Origin: Marsupella aquatica
Taxonomy: Eukaryota; Plantae; Marchantiophyta
DNA: 64,000 nt
Assembly (NCBI GenBank): GCA_973895155.1
Contig: OZ316898.1
Location: 4,637,079-4,701,078, forward strand
Direction: 5' to 3'
Below are positions 34,812-37,979 of the stretch, piece after piece (within the stretch, counting starts at the first letter, position 1; each line of letters starts with the position of its first letter). Under the pieces are notes generated by a model, which saw only the letters and a list, made by a program, of their open reading frames with translations, had not been told where the DNA came from and did not search any database. The translations under genes were made by a program, and so were the position numbers.

Positions 34812-37800
34812 TCACCAGTAATCACCACAAGAACACACGCCATCTTTAAAACGATGAAAGCGATTTGCATCCCTAGCTATAATCTCGCGTCCCGTCACCT
34901 TGGAGATGAACTTGGTTGCTGTGTGGCAATCCGAACACACCCGAAGGTTCTTATATACACAAATTGGTTTTTCCCGAGGTATGCGCATTAGTCCGTACAC
35001 AATAGCCAACTTCTCACTATGAGAGCAAAGAGCTAGTTCTTTGTCCTCCTCATCGATATTCTGCAACACAAGCTGGGTATCGGGAATGTAGCCTTCAACC
35101 TTCAGTTTTTCAGTCAGATTATTCAGCTCAGTATATATATCCTTCGCTTCTGGGTGAAATGTATCCCCTACAACAAATTCATGGATCTTGTTATCAACTT
35201 CAATCCAGCTCCGCCCTGGCTCCTTCCGAACACCTCTCTTGTGCATCATAGTGCGCACCTCTGACACCTTCTCCCATTTGCCAGCTGCAGCATAGATGTT
35301 GGAGAGGGATACATACGCAGCGGCATTATTGGGTTCCAACTTGAAAAGCTCTTCAGCGGCAAGCTCGCCCAACTCCACGCTACCGTAAGTTTTACAAGCG
35401 CCAAGCAAGGCTTTCCAGGTTACATCATCTGGTTCAACTGGCATGTCACTAATGAAGAGCTTTGCTTCCTCCAAGTGTCCAGCCCGCCCAAGAAGATCCA
35501 CCATGCAGTTATATTGCACAACGTCAGGCTCGATGCCATAATCTTGCGTCATAGCTAAAAAGAGTCTACGGCCGTCATCAACAAGGCCTGCATGACAACA
35601 GGCTGACAACACTGCCACGAATGTAGTCCCGGTTGGCTTCACCAGGTCCGCATTCATTTTCCTGAAGAGTTCCAGAGCCTCACGCCCACACCCATGCTGT
35701 GCAAGCGCACCGATCATCGTATTCCACGTGACTACATCGCGTTTCTCCATTCTCTCAAAAACTAGTCGGGCGTCGTCTATACTGCCACTCTTGGCATACA
35801 TGTGAACAATTGCATTGCCCACACGCAAATCCGACTCCAGTCCCGCTTCGCTAGCATGGCCATGAACCTCCTTCACCCAATCCAAAGCCCCTGCACTTTC
35901 AGATGCGTTCAGGATGCTCATATAAGTGATTGCATTTGGTTCTAAGCCTTCCCGTCTCATTTGGCGAAACAGTCGATACGCTTCCTGATGGCGACCACGT
36001 TCTGCATACGCGCCAATCATTATGTTCCAAGTTATTACATCAAGTGTCTTCAATCTGTCAAAAATCAATCGGGCATCATCCAAACTACCACTTTTCGCAT
36101 ACATGTGAACAAGTGTAGCGCCTACACGCAAATCCGACTCCAGTCCCGATTTACTAGCATGGCCATGAACCTCCTTCACCCAATCCAAAGCCCCCGCACT
36201 TGCAGATGCGTTAAGGATGCTCAGATAAGTGACTGCATTTGGTTCTAAGCCTTCAAGTCTCATTTGGCGAAACAATCGATATGCTTCCTCACCGCGTCCA
36301 CCCTCTGCATAGGCGCCGATCATTATGTTCCACGTGATTACATCGAGCGTCTTCAATCTGTCAAAAACTAGTCGGGCGTCATCTATACTGCCGCTCTTTG
36401 CATACATACGAACCAGTGCATTGCCCACACGCAAGTCCGACTCCAGTCCCGCTTTGATAGCATGGCCATGAACCTCCTTCACCCACTCCAAAGCCCCCGC
36501 ACTTGCAGATGCATTCAGGATGGTCATATAAGTGACTGCTTTTGGTTCTAAGCCTTCCCGTCTCATTTGGCGAAACAGTCGATATGCTTCCTCACCGCGA
36601 CCACGTTCAGCATACGCGCCAATTATTATGTTCCATGTGATTACATTGCGCTTCTTCAAGCTGTCAAAAGTCAATCGGGCATCATCAATACTACCACTTT
36701 TCGCATACATGTGAACAAGTGCATTGCCCACACGCAAATCCGGCTCCAGTCCCGCTTCGCGAGCATGGCCATGAACCTCCTTAACCCAATCCAAAGCCCC
36801 CCCACTTGCAGATGCATTAAGGATACTCAAGTATGTGATTGCATCTGGTTCGAAATCTTCCCGTCTCATTTCGAGAAACAGTCGAAATGCTTCCACACCA
36901 CGACCACTCCCTGCATATGCTCCAATCATCATATTCCATGTGATTAGATCTCGTTTTCTCATTCTCTCAAACAGTCGCCGGGCATCATCCACATTGCCAC
37001 TTGCGGAGTAGGCACCAATCATGACAGTCCAAGTCCTAAAATCTCGATTATTCAATTTGTCAAAAACTCGCCTTGCCTCCGTGATGCACCCACACTTTGC
37101 ATACATCTGAAGGAGGGCAGTCCCTACACGTACGTCTGATTCAAAGCCGGCATGTCGAATACACTCATGAACTTCTTTTCCCCATTGTAAAGCTAATGGG
37201 TTGGCACATGCCTTCAGAATGCTTAGATATGTGACCTCATTAGGCCGCGCCCCTTCTTGGCGCATTAGTTTGAAAAGTTCCAGCGCGGATCCAGCATGAT
37301 CACTCTTAGCATATCCTGCAATCATCATGTTCCAAGTGAGAACATTTTTCTTCTCAAATTCATCAAAAACTCGACGTGCATCCAACAATTCCCCGCAGCT
37401 GATATATACATTCAGGAGGGTGTTCGCCACATATGGATTCTTATCCATTTTACTCTCGATGATGCACTCATGAACCTGCTTGGCCGCTAAAAGGTCTTTC
37501 TGTTTCCAGCACATTTGCAGAACTTGAACATACGTGTACGAGTCTGTAGGAATGCCTCGTTGTAGACGATTCATCAAAACAGCCATTGCTTCACTCGTGG
37601 TACCAGCATTATCCATGTGCCTACTGCCACTCCCTCGTGCAGCGTCTTGGGACCAAGCTCTGGTGCCATGACTAGCATGAGACTGCAATCTGCTTCCAGT
37701 GATCAATTTGCGCCTTGCCTTCACCCATGTTGATGTTGACCGGCCATCCACCCAAAGTGCTTTCCTTGTCACCTTATGATTAAACTCGGGTGCTCTGGGG

Positions 37801-37979
37801 TTCCGCTGTCGACACCACACCGTCCAAGTATGGATTTCCTCGTATCCCTTGCTCTGCTGCGATCTTTGGTACGGATAACTCGCAAAAGTGATATAACTCC
37901 GTTTCAGCTGAGAGTAACGGCTATCTGTCAAGAATGCCATGGTGTTAGAATAGAATTTCAAAGTAATTGTGACAGGCAT
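34812..37979 (-). CDS. PLS-class pentatricopeptide repeat protein with E1/E2/DYW cytidine deaminase domain (organellar C-to-U RNA-editing factor), moss PPR56-like
   Basis: 1055-aa intronless ORF with ~21 P/L/S motifs, PG box PGRSWIEV, HSEKLA, CSDCH and terminal CSCGDYW. The AGALEWVKEVH..LRVGNALVHMYAKSGSIDDAR repeats are typical of moss editing factors. Alternative ATG at 37940. Confidence 0.97.
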   Translation of the reverse strand: MPVTITLKFYSNTMAFLTDSRYSQLKRSYITFASYPYQRSQQSKGYEEIHTWTVWCRQRNPRAPEFNHKVTRKALWVDGRSTSTWVKARRKLITGSRLQSHASHGTRAWSQDAARGSGSRHMDNAGTTSEAMAVLMNRLQRGIPTDSYTYVQVLQMCWKQKDLLAAKQVHECIIESKMDKNPYVANTLLNVYISCGELLDARRVFDEFEKKNVLTWNMMIAGYAKSDHAGSALELFKLMRQEGARPNEVTYLSILKACANPLALQWGKEVHECIRHAGFESDVRVGTALLQMYAKCGCITEARRVFDKLNNRDFRTWTVMIGAYSASGNVDDARRLFERMRKRDLITWNMMIGAYAGSGRGVEAFRLFLEMRREDFEPDAITYLSILNASASGGALDWVKEVHGHAREAGLEPDLRVGNALVHMYAKSGSIDDARLTFDSLKKRNVITWNIIIGAYAERGRGEEAYRLFRQMRREGLEPKAVTYMTILNASASAGALEWVKEVHGHAIKAGLESDLRVGNALVRMYAKSGSIDDARLVFDRLKTLDVITWNIMIGAYAEGGRGEEAYRLFRQMRLEGLEPNAVTYLSILNASASAGALDWVKEVHGHASKSGLESDLRVGATLVHMYAKSGSLDDARLIFDRLKTLDVITWNIMIGAYAERGRHQEAYRLFRQMRREGLEPNAITYMSILNASESAGALDWVKEVHGHASEAGLESDLRVGNAIVHMYAKSGSIDDARLVFERMEKRDVVTWNTMIGALAQHGCGREALELFRKMNADLVKPTGTTFVAVLSACCHAGLVDDGRRLFLAMTQDYGIEPDVVQYNCMVDLLGRAGHLEEAKLFISDMPVEPDDVTWKALLGACKTYGSVELGELAAEELFKLEPNNAAAYVSLSNIYAAAGKWEKVSEVRTMMHKRGVRKEPGRSWIEVDNKIHEFVVGDTFHPEAKDIYTELNNLTEKLKVEGYIPDTQLVLQNIDEEDKELALCSHSEKLAIVYGLMRIPREKPICVYKNLRVCSDCHTATKFISKVTGREIIARDANRFHRFKDGVCSCGDYW

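Follow-up and report, generated by a model that had tools for sequence, protein, structure and literature searches.

An OSB-type PDF half-motif in the N-terminal extension of a PLS-DYW RNA-editing factor of Marsupella aquatica

In early land plants, RNA-editing factors are considered self-contained, combining a pentatricopeptide repeat (PPR) array with a DYW deaminase, and the PDF motif is regarded as a signature of the OSB proteins of DNA maintenance. The motif has been described as the single-stranded DNA (ssDNA)-binding element of OSB proteins (PMC6963530, PMC4166229), and a 2026 survey of 182 OSB genes, which retained only proteins with both an OB fold and a PDF motif, leaves PPR proteins unmentioned (PMC13393729). 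The full-text literature searched, outside which most subscription journals lie, yielded no paper linking PDF motifs with PPR proteins; one review contains both terms, unconnected. Here, the two occur together in a gene of the liverwort Marsupella aquatica that lies on the minus strand at 34812..37979 of a 64,000-nucleotide window (positions 4,637,079 to 4,701,078 of contig OZ316898.1, assembly GCA_973895155.1). The gene encodes an array of PLS-type PPRs together with E and E+ motifs and a DYW deaminase domain, and, judged by profile and pairwise alignments, a segment of its N-terminal extension represents an OSB-type PDF motif of which the C-terminal three-fifths survive. What is new here is a PPR-DYW editing factor with an OSB-derived module, which in this gene is truncated.

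In its PLS array, its E and E+ motifs and its DYW domain with HSE and CSDCH, the protein resembles canonical PLS-E-DYW factors such as Physcomitrium PPR56, in which recognition and deaminase functions also reside in one polypeptide. It differs from them in the PDF-derived segment of the N-terminal extension, a module unmentioned in the PPR literature searched. With OSB proteins it shares the conserved residues of the second part of the motif and the site of a former intron, which agrees in position and phase with the intron dividing the PDF motif of a true OSB gene. Unlike OSB proteins, it has no OB-fold or SSB domain (a Pfam search of the whole protein gives no match to PF00436 or any other OB fold), the remainder of the protein being an RNA-editing factor; moreover, the motif is N-terminal here and C-terminal in OSB proteins, and only about 60% of it is present.

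Identity of the half-motif and origin of the adjoining residues

The first-pass annotation placed a degenerate OSB-type PDF motif at 37719-37826, an interval that corresponds exactly to codons 52-87, upstream of the first PPR, with a translation that agrees letter for letter. A phmmer search with residues 36-135 against 1.84 billion representative proteins returns 98 proteins at E ≤ 1e-3 and 13 at E ≤ 1e-10. Each of the best matches aligns between two and seven times, over query positions 17-59 (residues 52-94), and proteins named OSB3 by NCBI are among the top matches (Chenopodium quinoa, 1.3e-17; Amborella, 2.1e-13), each matching three or four times over this interval. Pfam SSB is present in 18 of the 43 long non-PPR matches, and pairwise alignments with the OSB-type matches follow the pattern NP-x-AP-D/E-F-x-H-K-x-T-x-x-A-L-W-x-D...W-V-K-A. 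A profile of the OSB PDF motif (51 positions, 142 repeats, taken from the non-PPR phmmer matches only), whose consensus matches that given in the first-pass annotation, scores the protein at a significant 33.2 bits (domain E = 2.4e-11), with profile positions 19-49 aligned to residues 58-88. The library-wide E-values rule out a chance resemblance to OSB, and on this evidence the relationship is one of real homology. The likeness to OSB that had been claimed for residues 52-87 holds from R59 onwards; residues 52-57 are not homologous, and Q58, within the profile match, is derived from an intron. The half-motif proper comprises residues 59-88 (37716..37805, minus strand), equivalent to profile positions 20-49.

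The residues kept in the half-motif are NP, P-E-F, H-K, T, A-L-W and W-V. No variation is seen at L75, W76 and W85 in 34-46 related fragments, of which more than 90% keep the aspartate of P-D-F that is a glutamate here, bearing out the proposed degeneration of PDF to PEF. Profile positions 1-18 are absent from the protein, and a six-frame profile scan finds no exon for them in the window. No Pfam family matches the N-terminal 140 residues at E ≤ 1, and the PDF motif evidently has no Pfam model. A search of the PDB with the N-terminus gives only a chance CasPhi row (E = 0.92), and the ESM Atlas contains no usable match for residues 40-100 or for the PDF region of a Ceratodon relative.

Residues 52-58 can be traced by comparison with paralogues. 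Two PPR-DYW proteins of the leafy liverwort Calypogeia fissa (P0001 and P0002) are the nearest over the N-terminus, with 59-60% identity and synonymous divergence (dS) of 0.3-0.5. Approximately 190-215 bp that are present in all three Calypogeia paralogue loci (L001, 3634-3813; L002; L009, 4865-5075) are missing from the window, GT donor included, and the gap sits exactly between the equivalents of T53 and R59. In L001 and L002 the insert begins with GT and ends with CAG (borders in L001, GAG/GTACGC...CGACAG/AGG) and is spliced out in the P0001 and P0002 models, and L009 shows the same gap at that spot, with an intron end reading LWCWQ. Positions 37806-37821 on the minus strand align with the last 16 nt of the paralogue intron and encode VWCRQ, compared with LWWRQ or LWCWQ when the paralogue introns are translated through; the 3' end of the intron is also conserved in a metagenome contig described below (L003). 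These 16 nt supply the last base of codon T53 and codons V54-Q58, and the outcome is a net gain of 12 nt in the coding sequence with the frame kept. A deletion of about 200 bp removed the donor and most of the intron, so that a single frame now runs from an unrelated exon through 16 nt of intron into the half-motif. Among the loci compared, the loss is confined to this gene; the three Calypogeia loci examined retain the intron.

The segment upstream of the remnant, residues 1-53 (37822..37979, minus strand), aligns with L001, L002 and L009 in tblastn and DNA comparisons, is equivalent to the upstream exon annotated in the Calypogeia paralogues and is predicted to be disordered [predicted local distance difference test (pLDDT) score of ∼50]; it shows neither a profile signal nor a DNA-level relation to the PDF motif. 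W52 belongs to this segment; the paralogue loci have W, R or L in its place, and two further models have G. Since W52 lies in an unrelated exon and V54-Q58 come from former intron sequence, the supposed altered WWDNR half of the motif is a coincidence. A by-eye likeness (F-A-x-P-x-Q) between the upstream exon and the exon for the N-terminal half of the motif in L003 was considered and dropped, there being no DNA match and no profile signal. An upstream first exon of the kind present in the Calypogeia models P0002 and P0006 has no credible tblastn match in the window.

The N-terminal half of the motif is absent throughout the Calypogeia-type paralogues [CAM6107871.1 (P0006), CAM6123894.1 (P0013), P0001, P0002, P0174, P0238 and P0250], which have a common unrelated upstream exon in place of the LW..F..P..WWDNR exon and share with this gene the succession of that exon, half-motif and linker. 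Their half-motifs are more degenerate than that of Marsupella (9-22 bits or a stub): with the OSB-only profile, the C-terminal half scores 33 bits in this gene, 22 in P0006/L009, 17 in L002, 10-14 in L001 and 10 in P0013, and three further Calypogeia models retain a stub of only about ten residues. From these scores the paralogue C-terminal halves read as a decay series. A word-index search of the protein collection found no protein more than 65% identical to the PPR region of this gene, the nearest being those of Calypogeia fissa at 59-65%; the gene itself is thus not represented in that collection. The Calypogeia models P0001, P0002 and P0006 differ over their 5' exons, and the 214-residue P0006 is a truncated model, the tblastn match at its locus (L009, 4001-7507 of CBCUJL010000026.1) extending as far as 7507 across an entire PPR-E-DYW region.

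The half-motif and the PPR array share one uninterrupted open reading frame (ORF) of 1055 codons plus stop, as given by the program-made ORF list. An in-frame stop lies 12 sense codons ahead of M1, and the M1 ATG is also kept in L009. The half-motif is separated from the first PPR, which begins near residue 140, by a basic, Ser/Thr-rich linker delimited by alignment with the paralogues (residues 89-135; 37575..37715). The PLS-type array occupies residues ∼140-864 (35388..37562), with 9-16 stretches matched by each of the Pfam models PPR, PPR_1, PPR_2, PPR_3 and PPR_long (PPR_2, E = 2.3e-127). It is followed by an E motif (PF20431, 5.7e-21, residues 865-927), which contains the PG box at 921, upstream of the DYW domain, and by an E+ motif (PF20430, 1.9e-5, residues 932-959) whose 24.8 bits are barely over the cutoff of 24; together, the two occupy 35103..35387. 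The DYW cytidine deaminase domain (PF14432, 6.5e-39, residues 963-1055; 34815..35093) is complete, with the zinc-binding HSE at 987, CSDCH at 1015 and the terminal DYW at 1053-1055 all intact. By these domain matches, the gene is an intact PLS-E-E+-DYW factor. A second copy was not found within the window.

Complete motifs ahead of PLS arrays and a shared intron

Proteins of mosses, lycophytes and ferns, as well as bryophyte-like metagenome contigs, have complete PDF motifs, in one to three copies, ahead of PLS arrays, and their scores of 66-83 bits are on par with those of the motifs of OSB proteins themselves. In the moss Ceratodon purpureus, five such proteins (P0191 with 82.6 bits, P0149, P0237, P0243 and P0240) all have a DYW domain and are among the closest homologues of the PPR region. 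The lycophyte Diphasiastrum complanatum has proteins with one or two copies (P0058, P0063, P0145 and P0199), the fern Adiantum capillus-veneris has one with two copies (P0020), and a transcript-like Logan contig of 4.7 kb (P0040) encodes three copies and a PPR-E region in one continuous ORF. Two short metagenome matches that were checked (P0012 and P0015) are located upstream of PPR-E-E+-DYW coding DNA, at a distance of 200-650 bp and on the strand that carries it. None of the PDF-PPR proteins in question has a name (Ceratodon KC19_1G285400 and M758_12G068300; Diphasiastrum O6H91_09G020300, 01G051500 and 01G119900; Adiantum GOP47_0023879). They share with the Marsupella protein the order N-terminal extension, PDF, short linker, PLS array, E and (mostly) DYW, and the motif flavour K-V-T-R/K-K-A-L-W-V/I-D-G...T-P-x-W-V-K; unlike their complete 51-position motifs, the copy in this gene is single and truncated, and its intron has been deleted.

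The first-pass annotation treated the fusion as a special case and stated that canonical PLS-DYW factors lack the module. The moss, lycophyte and fern proteins with complete modules contradict the former view, and the latter statement is not general for PLS-DYW factors, angiosperm PPR proteins lying outside this comparison. The list of PDF-PPR proteins is a lower bound and is biased towards close relatives, the query for the whole library having been the degenerate copy of this gene. A word-index search with the PDF region of Diphasiastrum P0063 gave three candidates and recovered only the query, the index being too insensitive for a 57-residue motif. In a tree of 159 motif copies, the PPR-linked copies cluster (seven label changes compared with a mean of 20.9 after shuffling, with none of 500 shuffles as low), and the half-motif of this gene neighbours bryophyte PPR-linked copies. 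The tree is poorly resolved, such that a single origin of the PPR-linked motifs is allowed by it and is not demonstrated.

The gene structures provide a more direct link to OSB genes. When half-exons are scored each on its own, both halves of the motif of a PPR-linked relative are found in two exons in the metagenome contigs L003 and L004: the N-terminal half ends with ...WWDNRIDK followed by gtaatt, and some 223 bp further on ...ctgcag is followed by RNPGSPDF..., with a PPR-E-E+-DYW region downstream. An angiosperm-like contig (L007) contains a true OSB gene, made up of an OB-fold exon, an exon for the N-terminal half of the motif and an exon for the C-terminal half, in which the borders are ...NRKTK/gtaggt and ttgcag/KNPKYPDF. 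A phase-0 intron at PDF position 19/20 is common to L001, L002, L009, L003/L004 and the OSB gene. Many short library matches are gene calls that start at profile position 19-21, just after a translated ...LQ (ctgcag), and two Diphasiastrum isoforms of one PPR-E-DYW locus (P0145 and P0072) differ in the first exon, which is joined at the point of the PDF intron. The same phase and motif position in both kinds of gene argue for a DNA-level derivation of the PDF module in the PPR genes from an OSB-type gene, from which it was taken over as genomic DNA with its intron included. The fallback interpretation of the first-pass annotation, in which the motif is left over from an exon captured from an OSB-like gene, comes close to these structures.

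Three further observations concern these contigs. The OSB gene of L007 (3098-4189; ENA ERZ27276008, k141_34558), in which the phase-0 intron of ∼497 bp lies at motif position 20, stands beside an AUX/IAA gene. Gene calling breaks the PPR-E-DYW region that follows the PDF exons into three or four overlapping ORFs in L003 (3421-5904), L004 (2954-5740) and an 11-kb JGI contig, which suggests frameshifts arising from a pseudogene or from assembly error. A DDE_1 transposase gene is located about 0.8 kb downstream on the longest of these contigs.

Selection, predicted fold and rival explanations

The ratio of nonsynonymous to synonymous substitution rates (dN/dS) in the half-motif is 0.22-0.45 over 30 codons (Nei-Gojobori method, three within-family pairs), comparable values being 0.32-0.37 in the PPR region and 0.25-0.37 in the E-DYW region; in the adjacent linker (28 codons, residues 89-116) the ratio is 1.25-2.3. 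The synonymous excess in the half-motif is significant in two of the three non-independent pairs (p = 0.015-0.027), and indels in the motif region, including one of 3 nt, are multiples of three. Judged by these ratios, the half-motif is not neutral and is under purifying selection, and the neutral evolution that the first-pass annotation had named as a refutation is not borne out.

An AlphaFold2 (AF2) prediction of a complete motif (P0045, model m4f2f6a2ccff2, with an alignment of 46 fragments) consists of a helix, two short strands and a second helix, with pLDDT values of ∼90 over residues 11-50; a third strand-like stretch is suggested by the model. No solved analogue was identified for it, as Foldseek returns no row at E ≤ 0.001 and the best VIA-align Z score is 3.0, which is no proof of a new fold. 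For the N-terminus of the Marsupella protein, AF2 predicts disorder up to residue 55, followed by a hairpin and a helix with pLDDT values of 70-80, the helix spanning residues 84-101 and giving way to disorder in the linker. Missing from it is a third of the predicted fold, namely its initial helix and initial strand, on which the conserved LW...F and WWDNR are located. Autonomous binding of ssDNA by the half-motif is unlikely because this third is missing.

The half-motif is probably a conserved, non-autonomous remnant on an otherwise ordinary, intact organellar C-to-U editing factor. The protein would be imported into an organelle, where the PLS array would read the RNA lying upstream of the target C, which the DYW domain would deaminate; the half-motif would persist in the N-terminal extension, where it might belong to the presequence or make a weak, accessory and non-specific contact with nucleic acid or a partner. 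The moss PPR-DYW factor PPR56 edits correctly in Escherichia coli without its N-terminal region (PMC10482289), and on that basis neither recognition nor catalysis is expected to require the PDF-derived piece. Several points weigh against the interpretation as a remnant. The start codon and the translation of residues 1-121 are deduced from frame conservation alone, the role of the PDF motif on PPR proteins and any binding by the half-motif are matters of inference only, the dN/dS values derive from 30 codons in three non-independent pairs of which one is not significant, and the AF2 confidence for a 30-residue piece is weak evidence in either direction.

The first-pass annotation proposed a working ssDNA-binding or nucleoid-binding module, one that would anchor the deaminase on organellar DNA and so allow editing during transcription or possibly DNA-directed activity. 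Real homology to an ssDNA-binding motif, purifying selection, retention of the core residues (P, F, H, K, T, A-L-W and W-V) and a hairpin and helix that are still predicted are all in keeping with such a tether. It nevertheless appears unlikely in this protein, in which 18 of the 51 positions are gone, among them the conserved WWDNR as well as helix 1 and strand 1 of the predicted fold, and the near-invariant D of P-D-F is E; the further decay of the motif in the sister paralogues is unlike the behaviour of an indispensable domain, and the editing by PPR56 without its N-terminal region also argues against it. The converse explanation, a neutral relic in a cleaved targeting peptide with no role beyond its basic, hydroxyl-rich composition, could draw on the location of residues 58-88 in the range of long plant presequences, on the composition of the N-terminal 135 residues (21 R+K, 8 D+E and 30 S+T), on the disorder predicted for residues 1-55 and on the loss of half of the motif in other Calypogeia paralogues. 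This explanation is nonetheless improbable: a purely compositional constraint should treat the half-motif and the adjoining linker alike, whereas dN/dS is below 0.5 in the one and above 1 in the other, and the invariance of L75, W76 and W85 likewise points to constraint on particular residues.

It is also conceivable that the segment is untranslated, the real start being the downstream M122 or M133 and the segment a recently coding 5' untranslated region. The manner in which M1 was assigned, the conflict among Calypogeia gene models over the 5' exons and the destruction of the ancestral splice donor by the deletion would be compatible with this, but an open frame runs from M1 across the motif and on into the PPR array, the deletion and the 3-nt indel in the motif region both preserve it, dN/dS is less than 1 and L009 has kept the M1 ATG. 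With M122 as the start there would, in addition, be no space for a targeting peptide, and this alternative is very improbable.

Repeat numbers and significance for land-plant editing factors

The searches also revealed PDF motifs in unexpected numbers and lineages. A protein of Kingdonia uniflora (P0008; KAF6142360.1, 1160 residues) is OSB-like and has 13 recognizable PDF repeats, far above the one to five reported for OSB proteins. Five to nine tandem PDF repeats are present in proteins of the dinoflagellate Effrenium voratum (P0014 and its cluster mates) and the chlorophyte Sanguina aurantia (P0005). To our knowledge, reviews describe the PDF motif as restricted to green plants; the dinoflagellate repeats could reflect transfer, contamination or an older ancestry.

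Given the level of conservation of the complete modules, retention of OSB-type binding to single-stranded nucleic acid is the natural expectation, and the complete modules of the relatives, up to three per protein, probably still bind it. A broader and more tentative possibility is that PDF modules are an old functional accessory of PLS-PPR editing factors in non-seed land plants, acquired by exon shuffling from an OSB-type gene before the moss, liverwort, lycophyte and fern lineages split, that complete copies bind single-stranded nucleic acid or nucleoids and that the Marsupella gene represents a late stage of loss. If this were the case, the modules would make the factor locally more concentrated on nascent transcripts, this helper role being supplied in trans by other proteins in seed plants.

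For annotation, the gene models of the motif region conflict, and several of them cut the motif or truncate the gene. If the architecture is functional, it would link the organellar DNA-maintenance and RNA-editing toolkits and would offer a testable candidate for how editing factors without the helpers of seed plants reach their substrates.

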